DNA of 64,000 nucleotides, taken from the sequence record NC_049849.1. One strand, 5' to 3'. The notes beneath the pieces are model-generated. The model did not search any database and was not told the origin of the DNA. It worked only from the letters and a program-made list of their open reading frames with translations. Position numbers and translations under genes: made by a program. Positions 4,207 through 49,571 of this stretch are shown here, one piece after another. How positions within the stretch are numbered: position 1 is the first letter of the stretch; every line of letters begins with the position of its first letter.

Positions 4207-5838
4207 ATGCCTAGTTTCCGAACCCCATACGAGCAACAGCAATGGAACAATCTGGACAAGCAGTCGTCGCAGATGTTCGAGCGCTTGAAGAAAGGCCAAG
4301 CCACTTCTCAGGACTTGAAGGACGCACAGTCCCTGGTTGCTCAATACTCTGTACTCGCCAGCACGACGTTTGAAGAAGGCGTTAAGGCGATGTACATGAG
4401 CGCTGAGGCTGCGGCCAAGGCAGCGTCTGATGAAAGAGTAGCTAACGGCGGCGCGCCGTTCGACGAGGTTGAGTTCGCAGTCTTCATTGATGAGACTGTA
4501 ACCAAGATCGTAAAGGACGAAGGGGTTGAGCTTGCGCTGACAGTTGAGGACATTATCAAGTCCGAGCTGACAGAGCAAGACGACCGTACGTCATCGCTAC
4601 TCGAAGAAAAGATCAAGCAGTTTCAATCGGACAAGCGAGACGAGCTGCTTGATCCTGAAACCGAACAGCGCATGGCGGAGTTGCGCGAGAAGTATTCGGG
4701 GTCGACTGAGAAGGTTCCTGATGCTACTGCGTTAGAAACTACGACCACGCGTGCTTCTGCGTCTGCTCCGGTGTCTCAAGCCTTTGAAGCCGAAGTGACC
4801 GATGCTGCGCAGTCGAGCATGGAGACCGACAAGAAGCTGCGCGACTTGTTGGATGAGTACGGCAACGAGAATTGGCGCGACAAGCACGAAGAAGAAAAGG
4901 CTTCGATCTGGTGGCGCAAGTTCCAAGACTTCGGTGGCGGTAAGGTCAAGGCTGCTGGTAAGATGGGCCTTGGGTTGATCGCAGCATCGCTTGGTCTGAT
5001 TGCACGTACTGCCATGATGGAACTGTCTGGTGCTGAAATCTGGAAGAAGGTAGAGAGCTGGTTCTCGCTGGATAGCATCAAGGAAATGGGCAGCGCTGCG
5101 TGGGAGTATATCTCACGCAAAGGCCGTGAGCTTGCAGACTGGATCAGTGGTCAATTCAAGTCCGCTAGAGAAAAGCGTGACGAGAATGCAGGCGTGAAGG
5201 ATACCGATACTGAGGCCGTCAAGGAACTCAAGATCAAACTCCTGCAAGCCGAGACTCGAGCCAAAGAGGGCTACGCTCTACACGGTAACGAAGAGCTGAC
5301 CGAGATTGATAAGAAGGAAGTGACGCGACTCAAGTCTGCTCTTGAGCAAGCCATCAAGGATTCGCAAAAGGCGAAGGGTCCGTTGACCGATGAAAACGGA
5401 AACCCTATCACGCTACATGCTGACGGCTCTACCACGGCATCCTCTGGTGGTGGAGGCTCGGGCGGCGGAGGTGGTGGCGGTTCGACTGTAGGCGGAATGC
5501 CTGCTACTCCGGGCACCGCTAGTCAAACCAATCCTGTCGAGCAAGCTGCGTCGTCTACGGTTAACAACCAAGTCGATATGTCTCAGACTGCTGGGTCGAC
5601 TACGGTCAATCAAGACCAGACCGTGACTCCGGGATCGACGACGCAAGTTAGCCAAGACCAGAACATGACGCCTGCGGTATCTGTTCCTGCACCGGGGTCG
5701 GCTCCTGCCGAAAGCGCATCGCCTAGTCGAGCTGCTCCGCAAGCCGGTGGTGCTCAGACTGCTAGCCTTGCGACCATTCCTAATCAGAGTGGCATGACTG
5801 ACTTCCTCGGCATGTATAACTTTGGGATGTTCACGTAA
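4207..5838 (+). CDS. tape-measure / baseplate hub protein (gp29-like)
   Basis: 543 aa, helical and charged, with a central hydrophobic segment (LGLGLIAASLGLIA) and a low-complexity G/S/T/Q tail; position after the chaperone pair. Confidence 0.5.
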   Translation: MPSFRTPYEQQQWNNLDKQSSQMFERLKKGQATSQDLKDAQSLVAQYSVLASTTFEEGVKAMYMSAEAAAKAASDERVANGGAPFDEVEFAVFIDETVTKIVKDEGVELALTVEDIIKSELTEQDDRTSSLLEEKIKQFQSDKRDELLDPETEQRMAELREKYSGSTEKVPDATALETTTTRASASAPVSQAFEAEVTDAAQSSMETDKKLRDLLDEYGNENWRDKHEEEKASIWWRKFQDFGGGKVKAAGKMGLGLIAASLGLIARTAMMELSGAEIWKKVESWFSLDSIKEMGSAAWEYISRKGRELADWISGQFKSAREKRDENAGVKDTDTEAVKELKIKLLQAETRAKEGYALHGNEELTEIDKKEVTRLKSALEQAIKDSQKAKGPLTDENGNPITLHADGSTTASSGGGGSGGGGGGGSTVGGMPATPGTASQTNPVEQAASSTVNNQVDMSQTAGSTTVNQDQTVTPGSTTQVSQDQNMTPAVSVPAPGSAPAESASPSRAAPQAGGAQTASLATIPNQSGMTDFLGMYNFGMFT

Positions 5839-8748: not shown

Positions 8749-9873
8749 ATGAGCTACAACATACAAGACCGACTCTCGATCAGCATTGCGTTTGAGGGTA
8801 CTGAATATCCCCTAAGCAAATTTAATGTCTTGAATTTCTTGCACATCAGTTCGAGCATCAAGATGTTGTTGCCGCAGTTTCATATGTCGATCACGGACCA
8901 GTCTGGTATGTTGAACCGTGTAGGCATTCGAGATTCGTCCCGAGTGACTATCACCATTTCTGCAATCGGTCCTGACTCGGTGAGCAAGACCTACAGGTTC
9001 CGCGTCTACTCGTTCAAGAACTCGGAGACTGGGACGGGCACTCAGTGGGAAATGGATGGCTACCTTGACTCGGTGCCGTACTGGATCACGACGGTCAACG
9101 ATGGAATGCGCGGAACCTCTAACGAAGTGCTGGAACAGATCGCACAACGCTGCGGCCTTCGTTATGATGGTACTGTGACCAACGATGCGCAGCTGTGGCT
9201 CCCGCAGAATCGCATATGGGGTGAATTCGCACGGCGCATTGTCTCGCGTGGCTATGCCAACGACAAGTCGTGCATGAAGGCTGTAGTGACCAAGGAAGGC
9301 GTGCTGCGCTACAAGGATATCAACAACCTGCCCGAGCCTCAGTACTCGCTACTGCAGGGCGAAATGAAAGATGGTTGGTTGCCAATCGTTGATCACCGGC
9401 CGGTTAGCGAATCGGGAATGCAAAACGCATTGACGGGATATCAAGCGACGAGACGGCAGCAGTCTGTAGTGGCGCCTGTCGATCAGCTCGAGTTCTCTGA
9501 GTTGGCGTTCAAGCCTGACTCTAGATCGCCGCTGTACAACCTGGAAACCAAACGCGAAGTTGGTAGAGGCCGGCAGCAGTACTCGCCGATTGATGTGGGT
9601 AACGTGCATCCTGCATACGAGCAAGCTGCGTATCAGAACGTGCGATACGGCAACCTGTACAACTTGGCGATTGAATGCCAGTCGATCTTTCCGACGCCGC
9701 TGCAAGTCCTAGACAAGTTCAACTTCAGCTCGCAGCTGCTGCAAGGTGAAGCCAACAACGTGGCTAACGGTACGTACATTCAGACCGGGCACGTGGTCTT
9801 CCTGCAAGGCATCAACTACTACGAGAAGATCATCGGCGTACGCCACGGCACAAACATTTCGGAACAGCAATAA
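8749..9873 (+). CDS. baseplate hub protein (gp27/VgrG-N-like)
   Basis: 374 aa between gp53-like and spike genes; GTSNEVLEQIAQRCGL and LWLPQN motifs. Confidence 0.65.
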   Translation: MSYNIQDRLSISIAFEGTEYPLSKFNVLNFLHISSSIKMLLPQFHMSITDQSGMLNRVGIRDSSRVTITISAIGPDSVSKTYRFRVYSFKNSETGTGTQWEMDGYLDSVPYWITTVNDGMRGTSNEVLEQIAQRCGLRYDGTVTNDAQLWLPQNRIWGEFARRIVSRGYANDKSCMKAVVTKEGVLRYKDINNLPEPQYSLLQGEMKDGWLPIVDHRPVSESGMQNALTGYQATRRQQSVVAPVDQLEFSELAFKPDSRSPLYNLETKREVGRGRQQYSPIDVGNVHPAYEQAAYQNVRYGNLYNLAIECQSIFPTPLQVLDKFNFSSQLLQGEANNVANGTYIQTGHVVFLQGINYYEKIIGVRHGTNISEQQ

Positions 9874-10691
9874 TGTCGCAGGTAAACAGCCTAAACGAAA
9901 ACATGGAGGCCTCTGGTGACGGCACTGACCGTCGTTACCTGGGCCGTGTTACCGCTTATGAAGACCCCGCTGGTCAGAATCGGTTTCAAGCGGACATTCA
10001 GGGCGAGTTCGGTGAAGGTGAGAAACCGCTGATTGGTCGAGTGCATCAGTCGCCGTTCGGCATCGGCCCTGGCTTCGGAGTCTATGGCAGCCCAGCGCCT
10101 GGCAGCTTAGCAGTCATGAGTTTTCAAGACGGCGACAAGAACTACGGTATGCTGGAAGGCTTCATGATTTCCGCATCCGATGTGAACCCCGAGTTCCGCG
10201 ATGGCAAGGTGTGGGGCTACGTCGATCCGAATGGCACGAAGCTCAAGGTCGATACGCGGAACCAAACGTATGAGTTCGTGCATGTGTCTGGCACTGAATA
10301 CCAAATCGACGCATCTGGCAATCTCACGATGCACACGGTCGGCGGCAAGACTGTTCAGATCGACCAGAACCTGAACATCCATGTGAACGGCAATGCCTCA
10401 ATCGTTAGCGATGGGCAGATGTATATCAAGGGCAGTGACGCCGTGATCGATTGCAATACGACGATCAACGGCAACTTGCAGGTCAATGGTAACGCTTCGA
10501 TCCAGCGCCGCTTGTCCTACTTCGGCGGCTTGACTGGTCGCAATACGTATGGCGGCGGCGGTGATGCTGCAGACATTCAGGGCAACGTTCTGCACTCGAA
10601 CGGCAGTATCATATCCAACAACGTGACCTTGCACACTCACCAACATGATGCACCTAACGGCAGAACCTCTTCACCAATCGTAGGAAGCTAA
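9873..10691 (+). CDS. central spike (gp5 OB-fold / P2 gpV-like) with HxH metal-binding tip
   Basis: YLGRVTAYEDPAGQNR OB-fold start, beta-helix repeats (LNIHVNGNASIVSDG), C-terminal LHTHQH. Confidence 0.85.
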   Translation: MSQVNSLNENMEASGDGTDRRYLGRVTAYEDPAGQNRFQADIQGEFGEGEKPLIGRVHQSPFGIGPGFGVYGSPAPGSLAVMSFQDGDKNYGMLEGFMISASDVNPEFRDGKVWGYVDPNGTKLKVDTRNQTYEFVHVSGTEYQIDASGNLTMHTVGGKTVQIDQNLNIHVNGNASIVSDGQMYIKGSDAVIDCNTTINGNLQVNGNASIQRRLSYFGGLTGRNTYGGGGDAADIQGNVLHSNGSIISNNVTLHTHQHDAPNGRTSSPIVGS

Positions 10692-10692
10692 G

Positions 10693-10755
10693 ATGGCAGC
10701 CCCTAGTAATTTTATGCTTCAGTTGCAGGGCGCTGACTGGATCGCGCTACCCTGA
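10693..10755 (+). pseudogene. orphaned 5' fragment of the gp25 gene (MAAPSNFMLQLQGADWIALP*)
   Basis: 12 of the first 17 residues are identical to the N-terminus of the gp25-like CDS at 11677 (MSAPTNFALNLSGADWI); starts 1 nt after the spike stop. Confidence 0.8.
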
Positions 10756-10768
10756 AAGTGTACCTTAC

Positions 10769-10777
10769 AATTTAATA
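10769..10777 (+). promoter_or_regulatory. AATTT(A/C)ATA motif, putative late promoter of the endonuclease
   Basis: AATTTAATA followed by CAGGAGG RBS and ATG 10799. Confidence 0.5.
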
Positions 10778-10798
10778 GCATTCTCAGGAGGCTATTAA

Positions 10799-11680
10799 AT
10801 GAAAGAGCACTATGTGTATGTACTGCGCATCAAACGGGCACGCGCTCCGTTCTACGTTGGTAAAGGCAAGGGTCGCCGTGCTTGGATGCACTTCACCAAG
10901 CGTGAACTGGCGATCAAGAGTCACAAAAGTCACACTATTCTGAAAGCAATGGCTGAAGGCAAAGAGGTTTTAGTTGAGTTCATCAAAGAGAATCTGACTG
11001 ATGCGCAGGCATGCAAACTCGAAATAGCGACCATTGCAAAATATGGCCGTCGACTGGATGGCAGTGGCATCCTCACCAATCAAGCAGTTGGTGGAGAGTC
11101 TCGCAGCGGATGGACACATTCGGAAGAAGCCAAGCGCAAGATTGCGAAGACAGGCAAGGGGCGTAAGCACACTGAAGAAACCAAGCAGCGCATTGCCGAC
11201 TGCTCACGTAAACAAAAACACAAGCCACACACAGAAGAAGCTAAGCGCAAAATCAGTGAGGCTGGTAAAGGCCGCTCAAACGGACCCATGTCAGAGGAAC
11301 AGAAAGCCAAGATAAGTGCGGCACTCAAAGGTCGCAAAGTTCCGCGAGAACGTGTAGAGAGAAGTGCTGCAAGCAATCGCGGCAAGAAGCGATCCGAAGA
11401 AACCAAACGAAAGATTAGCGAGTCGCGCATGGGTCTTTCTTATGGACCTATGTCAGAGGCGCACAAAAAGAAAATCAGCAAAGCCAACAAAGGTAGGACG
11501 AAATCTCCGGAGTCGATTGCGAAAACAGCAGCAGGCAATAAAGGACAGAAACGTACACCAGAACAGAGGGAACGTATGCGGCAAGCAGCACTGAATAGAA
11601 AACCATTTTCCAAAGAACATAAAGCGGCTCTGTCCGCAGCGCAGCGTAAGCGCCATGCAAAGCTTAGAGGTGAAGCATGA
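10799..11680 (+). mobile_element. free-standing GIY-YIG homing endonuclease with about 10 NUMOD3 repeats
   Basis: YVYVLR...FYVGKG...R...H catalytic motif, E in CKLEIATI, LTNQAVGG; repeated HSEEAKRKI/MSEEQKAKIS units; flanked by 15/16-identical direct repeats (10729-10744, 11713-11728). Confidence 0.9.
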
Positions 11681-12096
11681 GTGCCCCTACTAATTTCGCC
11701 CTCAATTTATCCGGCGCTGATTGGATCGACGTAAACACGTTGATGACCCAGTCGGTGTATCCTGATCGACTACCCGATGAGCTCTCAATCACCAATGCGT
11801 CGCTCATCAATCTTTTGAACTGCCCCATCGGTGCGCGTGGTCGAATCTTTGAGCCGACCTATGGCTCGATGATCTACCAATACCTTCAGGAGCCCATTGA
11901 TGAGACGACTGCTCAAGCGATTCAAGTCTCGTTCATTCAAGCAATCGCTAAATGGGAACCGCGGATTGAACTGGATTACTCTGGCACATACATTCGCCCT
12001 GACTATACCATTCCTGGTTATCACATACGTCTGGCATTCACCATAGTACTGAGTGGTGCCAAGGCTACGGTCGACTTCAATCTTGCTCAAGGCTAA
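11677..12096 (+). CDS. baseplate wedge / sheath initiator (T4 gp25-like)
   Basis: LLNCPIGARGRIFEPTYGS...LQEPID...AIAKWEPRIEL is the gp25/GPW signature. Confidence 0.9.
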   Translation: MSAPTNFALNLSGADWIDVNTLMTQSVYPDRLPDELSITNASLINLLNCPIGARGRIFEPTYGSMIYQYLQEPIDETTAQAIQVSFIQAIAKWEPRIELDYSGTYIRPDYTIPGYHIRLAFTIVLSGAKATVDFNLAQG

Positions 12097-12098
12097 TT

Positions 12099-13871
12099 AT
12101 GGCTGACGAAATTCTCCAACTATCAGACCTGACTGCTGACTTTGACGAGTTCAAAGATCAGTTCAACGAATTCCTGCGTACTCGTCCTGTATGGAAGGGC
12201 ACGCTGACGACCATGACCTCGCAGACGTTGATCGACCTGGTGTCGGCTGTGGGTGCTCATGCGCAAGCTCGACTGATGCGAGCCAGTGAAGACTCGTTCG
12301 CAGAGACGGCACAGTCCGATGATGCGATTCGAGCAATCACGCAAATGCAAGGGTTACGACTGACGCGTAAGAATCCTGCTGTGATTCCTGCAACGCTAAA
12401 CTCTGCGCAAGACGTGACTATCCCGCCATACACGCAGTTCACCGTTGGTGGTCAATACTACTTCAACCGCGATCAGCTCCCCATCGTTGCCAACGTGCCC
12501 GAAGCGGTTGAGCTCTATCAAGGTCAGCTCGTTGTCTACCAAGTCGGCATGGTCGGCACGCCGTACCAAACTTTCCTGTCGGACGAGGACGGCTTCAACG
12601 TCAGCGATACTGATACGGTAGTGCGTGTCAACGGCAACATCATTGAACAGTCGCGTGGCGGCCTGTGGAACTACAGGAACCTTCCTGCCTATTCTGACTT
12701 GACGTTGGCTGATGGCAAGCTGCTGGTGCAGTTCGGCAACGAAACCTTCGGGTCGATGCCCGGCGTCAACGATACGGTGCTCATCAGCTACGCGTTGACC
12801 GAAGGCGACTCGGGCAACAACAAGAACCTGAAAGACAAGAAAGTCAACATCGACGGCTTCCCGTTGATATCTGGTATCGTTACTGCTGATCCGACTGGCG
12901 GCTCGGATGAAAAGCCTATCGTGGTTTATAAGAACGTGGCCTCGGGCTCGTTCGGTACATACCAATCGGCGGTTACTCGTGCGCAGTATATCGCAATGGT
13001 GTCGACTTATCCTGGCATCATTGACGCAATCACGCAAGCGCAGCGTGAGATTGATCCGATGGACCTCAAGTGGATGAACGTCATTCGCGTATCGGCTTTG
13101 ACCAACAGCCCGTGGACGCAGTCAATGATTGCGGACTTCATTGAGTACATGGAGAAGACTACCATGTATTCGACGCGCTTCTACTGGCAAGACCCGATCC
13201 CTGTTGACCGCGACCTTTCGATTAATGTGTACTGCTATAACACGGCAGTGCTGTCGCAGATCAAGCAGATTTCTGAAACGGCGATCACGCAACTGTTTGC
13301 TCCGAAGCCTGGCATTTTGCTGACTGACTTCTTTGAGTCGGATTTGACTTCGACCATCAAGACTGCAACGACCGGCCAGGTCTCGCACGTTGACGTTATT
13401 AGCCCTACGGTAGCGATGACTGTCAGCCCGCCTCAAGCCGTGAGACCCGAGGTTACTCCGGTGCCGGGTGGTGGCGTGTTAGGCCCTCAAGTCTACGGCT
13501 ACTCGATTGCAGTTGAGACCGCGGATGAGATTGGCCCGCCCAACAAGTGGGTGTTCCCACAACTGAAGGGCACGTTGGCAAACAATGCTTTGTCGTTGAC
13601 GTGGAAGACTGTACCGAACGCGATCCGCTATCATATCTATGGCCGCAACAGTCAGCAAGGCTACGGCTTGATCGTTACGCTGGCTGCAGTGCCGAACGTT
13701 GACACTATGACGTATGTGGATACTGGAGCAATCACTCCGGTTGGTCCTCTGCCTCCGACCATCAGTCAAGCGCCGATTCGTTATAACCGACTGCGTAGTC
13801 TCATCATCAACGTCTACTATGCGGATCGTCAACAGAAGATGGACGGAACACCTGAACGGAAATCAGTATGA
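12099..13871 (+). CDS. baseplate wedge protein (T4 gp6 / P2 gpJ-like)
   Basis: LTADFDEFKDQF, LIDLVSAV, SFAETAQ, VQFGNETFGSMP, GGSDEKP, AVTRAQY. Confidence 0.85.
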   Translation: MADEILQLSDLTADFDEFKDQFNEFLRTRPVWKGTLTTMTSQTLIDLVSAVGAHAQARLMRASEDSFAETAQSDDAIRAITQMQGLRLTRKNPAVIPATLNSAQDVTIPPYTQFTVGGQYYFNRDQLPIVANVPEAVELYQGQLVVYQVGMVGTPYQTFLSDEDGFNVSDTDTVVRVNGNIIEQSRGGLWNYRNLPAYSDLTLADGKLLVQFGNETFGSMPGVNDTVLISYALTEGDSGNNKNLKDKKVNIDGFPLISGIVTADPTGGSDEKPIVVYKNVASGSFGTYQSAVTRAQYIAMVSTYPGIIDAITQAQREIDPMDLKWMNVIRVSALTNSPWTQSMIADFIEYMEKTTMYSTRFYWQDPIPVDRDLSINVYCYNTAVLSQIKQISETAITQLFAPKPGILLTDFFESDLTSTIKTATTGQVSHVDVISPTVAMTVSPPQAVRPEVTPVPGGGVLGPQVYGYSIAVETADEIGPPNKWVFPQLKGTLANNALSLTWKTVPNAIRYHIYGRNSQQGYGLIVTLAAVPNVDTMTYVDTGAITPVGPLPPTISQAPIRYNRLRSLIINVYYADRQQKMDGTPERKSV

Positions 13872-20260: not shown

Positions 20261-20352
20261 GGGCTATCCTCGGGTATATGTAACTCCTATTACCATGATG
20301 CTCGGGTCTGATAGAAGTTCAAGCGGGACACCGTAGCGCCCGCGTGTGATGC

Positions 20353-20361
20353 TATGAAATT
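20353..20361 (-). promoter_or_regulatory. AATTT(A/C)ATA motif, putative late promoter
   Basis: TATGAAATT on the + strand, upstream of the 20260 start. Confidence 0.5.
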
Positions 20362-48829: not shown

Positions 48830-49178
48830 CCCTCCTGAATGGGTTAAGCTCGGTCCGCTGTGGATTCTGTCCGGGATGGCTACCATTGCTCAGACCGGAC
48901 ATTGCGAGTATGACGTTTCGTGCATCAAGACTTCCATGCACGAATGCTATCTCGCTACGGCTTATAAGCTGCTGGACTTGTTCGAGGAATCGAATGAGCC
49001 GGCAGCTGTTGCCGTATTCAAATCCTTTGCCATGCAAGTTATACCTGCGTTGCAAGCACACGCCGGACCGCGCATCGACCTACAGGTCACCGAAGAATAT
49101 GGAACCGTCGTAGTCAACAACGGCAAGGAAGTCCAGCGTCACGTTCAGACTACGGTACGTCTCACGCGCAAAATTTAA
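48813..49178 (+). CDS. hypothetical protein
   Basis: 121-aa ORF in operon. Confidence 0.55.
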   Translation: MTCASNPPEWVKLGPLWILSGMATIAQTGHCEYDVSCIKTSMHECYLATAYKLLDLFEESNEPAAVAVFKSFAMQVIPALQAHAGPRIDLQVTEEYGTVVVNNGKEVQRHVQTTVRLTRKI

Positions 49179-49180
49179 TA
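49172..49180 (+). promoter_or_regulatory. AATTT(A/C)ATA motif
   Basis: Followed by AGGAG RBS and ATG 49200. Confidence 0.5.
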
Positions 49181-49199
49181 GTTTGCATAGGAGCACACA

Positions 49200-49571
49200 A
49201 TGGCAACATATGATTTTCGCAGTAACAAAGTTGGGGACCTCAAGATCGGCATCATGCTCGAATGGGAAACCCAGCGCATCGTCGTTGCCAGTACCTTGAA
49301 CGTGAATACGCAAGAGCGAATTCTGATTGTGAAGGCAGCCAAGCCCGAGGACCGCGAAGACGTACAGCGCTTCATCAACGCGGCCTCTGGCGAGTTCACG
49401 GTCAAGAACAATCAGAAGTTCCTAGACACTCTTGCTGCGTACGTGGACGCCAAGTACACCGTGAAGTCGAAGAAGAACTCTATAGAATTCGACAGCGCAT
49501 CGAAGGCTCAAGCCTTCGCCAAAGCTAACGGTGCGACAATCACCAAGATCGTGGTAAAGGCAAATGGCTGA
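49200..49571 (+). CDS. hypothetical basic protein (possibly late/virion)
   Basis: Strong RBS; preceded by the late-type motif. Confidence 0.75.
   Translation: MATYDFRSNKVGDLKIGIMLEWETQRIVVASTLNVNTQERILIVKAAKPEDREDVQRFINAASGEFTVKNNQKFLDTLAAYVDAKYTVKSKKNSIEFDSASKAQAFAKANGATITKIVVKANG

Follow-up and report, generated by a model that had tools for sequence, protein, structure and literature searches.

Free-standing homing endonuclease genes (HEGs) are major drivers of exchange between phages, and imperfect invasions by such genes are seldom seen, since the products are usually either tidy or lethal. Here we describe a locus within a 64 kb stretch of sequence record NC_049849.1 (hereafter the window), region 9800-12600 of which is 100% identical to the Achromobacter phage Motura (MN094788, 221,431 bp; genus Moturavirus, host Achromobacter animicus). 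At this locus a HEG of the GIY-YIG/NUMOD3 type lies between the baseplate spike gene and the gene for the baseplate wedge protein gp25, and a displaced second copy of the gp25 start is found between the spike gene and the HEG.

Several described systems bear on such an arrangement. For the HEGs of phage T4, co-conversion of flanking DNA and control of expression by a hairpin and a late promoter are both known (PMC2988022). Phage genes split by a HEG include nrdA with mobE in Aeh1, the T4 topoisomerase genes 39 and 60 with mobA, and gene 43 of phage 25 (PMC2988022). In mitochondria, endonuclease open reading frames (ORFs) are found with the gene hybrids of atp6 in Allomyces macrogynus and of atp6, atp9, cox2 and nad3 in Glomus (PMC3630166).

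The Motura locus offers a neat record, made by nature, of a HEG invasion and is a variant of this known process. The HEG probably came from another phage and brought a donor gp25 start with it as flanking DNA, the first 17 codons of the recipient gene being left stranded behind the spike gene. The old and the new gene start, standing side by side, would then act as a natural marker of the joint made by the incoming DNA and perhaps of the cut site.

The two gp25 starts and the gene between them

The features of the locus, all on the plus strand, are given below with the evidence for each, with the two neighbouring genes last; loci of relatives are referred to by number (L011 and so on).

10693..10755, plus strand: displaced gp25 5' fragment, a 20-codon ORF with homology to the gp25 start over its first 52 nt (10693-10744)
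10729..10744, plus strand: 5' copy of a 16-nt near-repeat, which closes the homology between both gp25 starts
11713..11728, plus strand: 3' copy of the near-repeat, encoding the conserved G-A-x-W-I-D (sequence and family alignment)
10799..11680, plus strand: free-standing GIY-YIG/NUMOD3 homing endonuclease gene, 293 amino acids (aa), intact (Pfam, PHROG, conserved columns, fold)
11677..12096, plus strand: gp25 baseplate wedge gene, 139 aa, full length (Pfam PF04965; alignment from residue 1)
10745..10798, plus strand: AT-rich leader of the HEG, 54 nt (alignment with the leader of the L011 homologue)
10768..10779, plus strand: promoter-like motif with the core AATTT[AC]ATAG (conserved in the group; function putative)
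10768..10801, plus strand: predicted RNA hairpin over the Shine-Dalgarno (SD) sequence and start codon of the HEG (folding energy; counterpart in L011)
10786-10791, plus strand: SD sequence AGGAGG of the HEG (sequence)
9873..10691, plus strand: baseplate hub/spike gene, 272 aa, the 5' neighbour (PHROG baseplate assembly and hub families; synteny)
12099..13871, plus strand: gp6-like baseplate wedge gene, the 3' neighbour (PHROG 219 at 6e-50; syntenic in all relatives)

Several of these features had been listed in an earlier note made from the sequence alone, and everything that it listed is present at the coordinates given, apart from the wording used for the promoter. The 20-codon ORF begins one base past the spike stop (10691) and agrees with the start of gp25 (11677-11727) in 12 of 17 residues and 35 of 51 bases. 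The two 16-mers at its end and in gp25 lie 984 nt apart and differ by one mismatch, and the homology stops after them. When all six frames of the window were scanned (~128,000 positions) the next-best match to the gp25 17-mer had only 7 of 17 residues, so the resemblance reflects homology and a chance similarity is ruled out. The fragment is the product of a single truncation, its homologous part being free of frameshifts, stops and indels.

The two starts differ at 16 of 51 bases, a divergence about as large as that of the whole Motura gp25 from its nearest relative (70% identity). As 12 of the 16 differences fall in non-synonymous codons and 5 of the 17 residues differ, the working 5' end is not a "recoded" version of the displaced one, as had been suggested. 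Every one of the 17 remnant residues occurs in other members of the family and the seven conserved positions are unchanged; in simulations of 16 random substitutions the probability that all residues would stay compatible with the family was ~1e-4, and that the conserved positions would be kept ~5e-4. The compatibility of the remnant with the family (P ~1e-4) argues that the two gp25 starts diverged while each was in use, in different genomes.

Across the gp25 family residues A14, W16, D18 and N20 vary little or not at all, and the remnant ends within the most conserved coding stretch of the 5' third of the gene. The resident gp25 keeps the G-A-x-W-I-D stretch almost unchanged, so the destruction of the target site that had been proposed is not evident from its sequence.

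The gp25 gene that follows the HEG is of the functional type, as the earlier note had held. It matches both Pfam PF04965 (gp25/W) and the PHROG baseplate wedge family, can be aligned from its first residue with 43 relatives (133-144 aa), and has its own SD and ATG, the SD falling in the last codons of the HEG. A gene in pieces of the nrdA/mobE type is thereby ruled out, gp25 being full length from its first residue. The HEG stop TGA overlaps the gp25 ATG at 11677 (ATGA), and since the end of the HEG also supplies the SD, translation of gp25 in Motura is tied to the HEG reading frame. In both Motura and L011 it is the last HEG codons (Arg-Gly-Glu/Gln) that provide the gp25 SD (window 11640-11680; L011 5860-5888).

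The identification of the intervening ORF as a homing-type endonuclease was borne out by domain searches, alignment and structure prediction. Its protein matches the LEM-3-like GIY-YIG family PF22945 at 27.2 bits (cut-off 27), NUMOD3 (PF07460) at 1e-21 with three scored stretches, and a PHROG homing endonuclease family. In an alignment with 46 homologues all hallmark columns are present in Motura, with Y7, G21 and E75 invariant and Y19, G23, R27 and N94 nearly so. The AlphaFold model (predicted local distance difference test, pLDDT, 88.8) has an N-terminal alpha/beta domain of ~100 aa that matches GIY-YIG folds, including those of a 5-hydroxymethylcytosine-specific enzyme, UvrC, T4 EndoII and I-TevI, followed from residue 109 to 289 by a chain of short helices. 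The best sequence match in the PDB has an E-value of 0.018, and the match to the I-TevI fold a template modelling score of about 0.6 over the nuclease domain. Judged by sequence and model, the gene is a new member of the free-standing GIY-YIG/NUMOD3 HEGs, with a predicted nuclease activity.

The HEG is present as a single copy in Motura, which rules out another copy in the same genome as its source. Its GC content at third codon positions (0.466) is the lowest among the 74 window ORFs of at least 100 codons that were used for composition (mean 0.615, standard deviation 0.052). The leader is also AT-rich, with a GC content of 0.33 over its 43-nt spacer (10756-10798). The composition of the HEG suggests that it is of foreign origin and entered the Motura lineage from another phage.

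The leader of the Motura HEG aligns with that of its L011 homologue around a common core, CAATTT[AC]ATAGC, and this leader sequence was not found in L010 and L028, the nearest HEG-less relatives. The core motif AATTT[AC]ATAG occurs three times in the window against 0.07 expected, and a looser form, AATTTNATNG, five times against 1.2 expected. Its copies are as follows.

Window 10769-10778, plus strand: motif copy in the HEG leader
Window 49172-49181, plus strand: motif copy
Window 20352-20361, minus strand: motif copy
L004/L005 3479-3488: motif copy
L031 2967-2976: motif copy
L044 1626-1635: motif copy
L011 4967-4976: motif copy

The motif stands ~12-25 nt 5' of start codons, both at window position 49201 and before gp25 in several relatives. 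It is found in the spike-gp25 spacer just before gp25 in the HEG-less Burkholderia phages BcepSauron and BcepSaruman and in L031 and L044, and 5' of the HEG in L011 to L013, with variants in L018, L019, L020, L022, L034 and L042. On the strength of this distribution it can be put forward as a candidate promoter element for phages of the phiRSL1-like group. Of the HEG-less relatives, those closest to the two HEG-positive phages (L010 to Motura, L028 to L011) lack the motif, which therefore probably travels, with the leader, together with the HEG. A promoter-like motif before the HEG had been reported in the earlier note, and in this form it stands; a consensus scan of 9800-12600 found no sigma-70 promoter, nor was an intrinsic terminator detected in the vicinity of the HEG.

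In both HEG-positive phages the motif forms the 5' arm of a predicted hairpin, the 3' arm of which covers the SD and/or the start codon of the HEG. In Motura the start codon is wholly paired and the SD largely so, with a minimum free energy of -17.1 kcal/mol (z -3.4) for 10756-10815, while in L011 a hairpin at the same place (4969-5006) with another stem sequence reaches -20.1 kcal/mol (z -5.0). For I-TevI, I-TevII, I-TevIII, segB and mobE of Aeh1 it has been described that read-through RNA folds and is not translated, and that RNA from a late promoter beside the hairpin is translated (PMC2988022). By analogy with T4, the hairpin and motif in Motura would let the HEG be translated only from transcripts whose start lies within the hairpin.

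Empty and occupied sites among relatives

In order to compare the locus with those of relatives, spike, HEG, gp25 and gp6 were mapped on all fetched loci. The Motura spike gene is syntenic with that of phiRSL1, of BcepSauron and of metagenomic relatives. It had been predicted that HEG-free relatives would read from the spike gene straight into an undivided gp25, and this is what was found in phiRSL1 (Ralstonia), in BcepSauron and BcepSaruman, and in L010. The last of these, a metagenomic contig of 533 bp, carries the closest gp25 (81% identical) and contains the final 22 codons of the spike gene (73% identity with Motura), the stop, one base and the gp25 start, with neither a HEG nor a duplicate. 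The Motura fragment has the same layout of stop, one base and ATG as this empty allele and thus lies exactly where that allele has its gp25 start, in agreement with the earlier note.

No GIY-YIG/NUMOD3 gene lies near gp25 in 82 of the 92 distinct loci. Among the same 92, a HEG stands between spike and gp25 in four lineages (Motura, L011 to L013, L033 and L042) and between gp25 and gp6 in two loci (L031 and L032), and it is close by in a further three. The only close homologue of the Motura HEG, 49% identical, colinear and also of 293 aa, is that of L011 to L013, which comprise a metagenomic contig of 254 kb and two shorter contigs. In L011 the spike stop is separated from the HEG by 55 nt and the HEG from a complete gp25 by 3 nt, and no displaced fragment is present. 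Of 80 homologues of lower identity (41% or below) in IMG/VR, none has gp25, spike or gp6 within 2.5 kb. The gene shows presence/absence polymorphism at one site, being present in Motura and L011 to L013 and the site being empty in L010, phiRSL1, BcepSauron, BcepSaruman and most of the 92 loci. On the sequences at hand the HEG subfamily of Motura and L011 is tied to the position directly 5' of gp25, and the gp25 5' end that follows such a HEG can be regarded as its ordinary flank for that reason.

A second copy of a phage's own gp25 N-terminus was found only in Motura (12 of 20 residues, against at most 9 of 20 in the 78 other distinct loci), so HEG-free relatives do not share the duplication. 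No remnant was detected beside other HEGs or inserts at the spike-gp25 junction, either in the scan of these 79 distinct loci or in a targeted check.

A second subfamily of GIY-YIG/NUMOD3 genes, whose products are extended by ~60-70 aa at the N-terminus, occupies other borders of the same gene block (gp25/gp6, spike/gp25 and 5' of spike), which points to the baseplate block as a repeated landing place for HEGs. Its genes are as follows.

L031 3471-4469: second-subfamily gene
L032 3199-4224: second-subfamily gene
L033 2009-3013: second-subfamily gene
L042 1927-2889: second-subfamily gene
L038 1290-2204: second-subfamily gene

The spike/gp25/gp6 block of phiRSL1-like jumbo phages is in this respect a recurrent HEG landing place. 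In the public record the four genes of the Motura block (MN094788 167304-171302, corresponding to window 9873-13871), that is spike, endonuclease, gp25 and gp6-like, are all given as "hypothetical protein", a label borne by all five genes around the locus, and the 20-codon fragment is without annotation; our analysis corrects this annotation, and spike, endonuclease, gp25 and gp6 can now be named.

Further variation was seen at the spike end of the module. An ORF of ~340-360 aa fills the gap between spike and gp25 in L014 (1956-2990), L057 (591-1616) and L039 (1910-2989), and also in L082 and L128; it has weak zinc-ribbon or treble-clef matches (E 0.001-0.006, below cut-offs) and may be another mobile nuclease. 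In L020 (1772-2035), L022 (1782-2042) and L021 (2034-2333) small Gly/His-rich ORFs follow a spike ORF of ~200 aa, and a further ORF of 200-390 aa lies between them and gp25; with their short spike and small ORFs, these relatives have the spike end of the module built differently. In Burkholderia phage BCSR5 (L003 2047-3491) three annotated ORFs, a hub subunit (2047-2547) and two hypotheticals, stand in place of one spike gene before gp25.

Origin of the arrangement

The course of events that we favour would have begun with a HEG normally seated directly 5' of gp25 in phiRSL1-like jumbo phages, which entered the Motura lineage from another phage. A break in the 5' region of the recipient gp25 would have been repaired from a HEG-positive phage, with copying running leftward from inside gp25 through the donor gp25 start, the HEG and its leader with the promoter-like motif and hairpin. 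The right joint would have been homologous, within or after the coding stretch for G-A-x-W-I-D. The left joint would have been irregular, because the 3' ends of spike genes share little (31-42% protein identity between subgroups), and would have fused the imported DNA to the recipient gp25 at nucleotide 52. The expected product is that seen in Motura, with the recipient's 17 codons after the spike stop, then leader, HEG and a complete gp25 with a donor-type 5' end, which would now be translationally coupled to the HEG. Conserved coding stretches are the usual kind of target for such enzymes; the left joint may mark or adjoin the cut site, and the resident allele would be immune to the HEG.

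Which of the two copies is native was approached through their similarity to relatives. Over the first 36 nt the remnant agrees with L010 at 19 positions and the resident copy at 16, and over the repeat part the displaced copy agrees at 14 of 16 and the working copy at 15 of 16. Across the family the similarity of the 17 residues showed no trend with core identity (Spearman 0.04 and -0.08). Neither similarity nor family trees built on the 17 residues gave a signal that separates native from foreign, and the base counts are too close; since both copies are closer to each other than to L010, similarity does not single out either as the native one. Position favours the remnant as the native copy, as it has the empty-site layout against the spike stop. 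The resident copy directly adjoins the HEG, an arrangement also seen in L011.

The tract that would have been imported appears short, because the genes on both sides of it rank relatives in the same order. Identity of the spike is 40-42% to L014, L016 and L023 versus 31-33% to L011 and BcepSauron, and that of gp25 and gp6 is 56-61% versus 50-54% to the same two sets. L010 also resembles Motura on both sides of the junction.

A number of points weigh against entry from another phage. In the first 36 nt the two 5' ends agree at 21 positions, more than the 16 and 19 at which they agree with the nearest relative, and a rare Asp15 is common to both copies and L010 only; the donor was probably also a member of the Motura/L010 subgroup, or else the right joint lies before codon 13. 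That nearest relative, L010, is known only from its 533-bp contig. No donor was found by tblastn against phages, by searches of 5.8 billion proteins or by scans of IMG/VR, metagenomes and GTDB, and back-translated patterns of each gp25 5' end likewise returned no donor or closer relative from IMG/VR; beyond the 533-bp contig the best relatives in these searches had 61-68% identity for gp25 and 49% for the HEG. Finally, the 49% aa identity of the HEG to that of L011 is about as high as for the flanking genes (50-53%), as might also be expected after a long vertical residence with many losses.

A different origin was implied by the earlier note, in which the replacement N-terminus was treated as built-in cargo of the element. 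In its strict form this would mean a dedicated cassette of leader, HEG and replacement gp25 5' end that regularly inserts at codon 17/18 of gp25, so that it splits its own target and rescues the gene. The Motura layout fits such a cassette, and its left joint falls within the best-conserved coding part of the 5' third of gp25, as would be expected of a target site. However, the only other members of the subfamily, L011 to L013, sit between spike and gp25 without a displaced fragment, no other duplicate occurs among the 79 distinct loci, and a gp25 5' end that follows a HEG living 5' of gp25 is simply its flank. We therefore regard a dedicated cassette as unlikely, and a donor gp25 start carried along as flank as the simplest reading.

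The mutual closeness of the two copies in the first 36 nt, together with the rare Asp15 codon and the 15 of 16 repeat bases that they have in common, is what would be expected had the first 52 nt been duplicated in place on arrival of the HEG, with subsequent decay of the unused copy. Decay is difficult to reconcile with 16 differences in 51 nt that have introduced no stop and no indel and have left the residues family-compatible and the conserved positions intact (P ~1e-4), and the HEG is itself still intact; in-place duplication is accordingly quite unlikely.

The same product would also result if the exchange had its boundary on the other side, with the HEG-bearing genome resident, the spike side and 52-nt fragment received from a cut HEG-less phage and the HEG standing at the edge of the exchanged block, and nuclease genes have been reported at the edges of phage exchange (PMC10448857). 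As the flanking genes rank relatives alike, L010 is like Motura on both sides and the foreign tract looks short, an exchange of this kind seems very unlikely.

Least credible, and close to negligible in our estimate, is a self-splicing intron at 10745-11728 with an intron-encoded endonuclease and the remnant as exon 1 of gp25, for although many GIY-YIG endonucleases including I-TevI are intron-encoded (PMC2988022) and joining at the repeat keeps the frame, 10400-12200 has no Rfam match up to E = 10 save one chance microRNA match, just 54 nt lie outside ORFs, which is too little for a ribozyme core, and the gp25 after the HEG is complete and has an SD and ATG of its own. The earlier assumption that no splicing takes place is thus upheld by the lack of any intron signature in that region.

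Returning to an invasion from another phage, a stronger version of it, which we put forward tentatively and as a serious possibility rather than our expectation, would see in Motura the preserved trace of one-sided homing between deeply separated phages. The enzyme would have cut gp25 in a phage with a spike 3' end not homologous to that of the donor, one side would have been repaired by homology and the other irregularly, and the 52-nt fragment would record the position of the break. If true, this would give the mitochondrial endonuclease "gene hybrids" a first counterpart in phages, located at a gene's 5' end, and would show the entry of free-standing HEGs into genomes that are homologous on one side only.

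Comparison with described systems

In its general organisation the Motura HEG resembles the SegA-G enzymes of T4-like phages and I-TevI, with an N-terminal GIY-YIG nuclease followed by modular DNA-binding repeats, and like the Seg genes it has its place between or beside conserved essential genes, with some relatives that carry it and others that lack it (PMC2988022). For Seg and I-TevI flanking DNA is copied along with the gene and a hairpin covers the SD or start beside a promoter-like element (PMC2988022); in Motura a hairpin is predicted at the corresponding place, and flanking DNA was probably copied too. It differs from them in that the sequence similarity is distant, the genome is that of a phiRSL1-like jumbo phage and the site is the spike/gp25 junction. 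Unlike the Seg genes, Motura keeps a displaced fragment of the neighbouring gene, and no such description was found for Seg. A literature search, which was not exhaustive, found no phage precedent for a duplicated gene start beside a HEG, and the titles and abstracts of papers naming Motura contain no discussion of this locus.

The phage genes split by a HEG are similar in that a HEG lies inside what is one gene in related phages (PMC2988022). There the pieces are complementary and both are needed, whereas in Motura gp25 is complete and the 5' piece is a redundant repeat of residues 1-17.

The closest architectural parallel to the Motura locus is provided by the mitochondrial endonuclease gene hybrids. 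In those of Allomyces and Glomus, too, a foreign gene end becomes the working end and the native end is left as a remnant, and the two ends have diverged as DNA yet encode compatible protein sequence (PMC3630166). The native end in Allomyces and Glomus is near-identical to that of a close relative, whereas in Motura the displaced copy agrees with L010 at 19 of 36 nt and the working copy at 16 of 36. Motura also forms a mirror image of these hybrids, with the 5' rather than the 3' end of the gene exchanged and with a phage structural gene in place of an organellar one.

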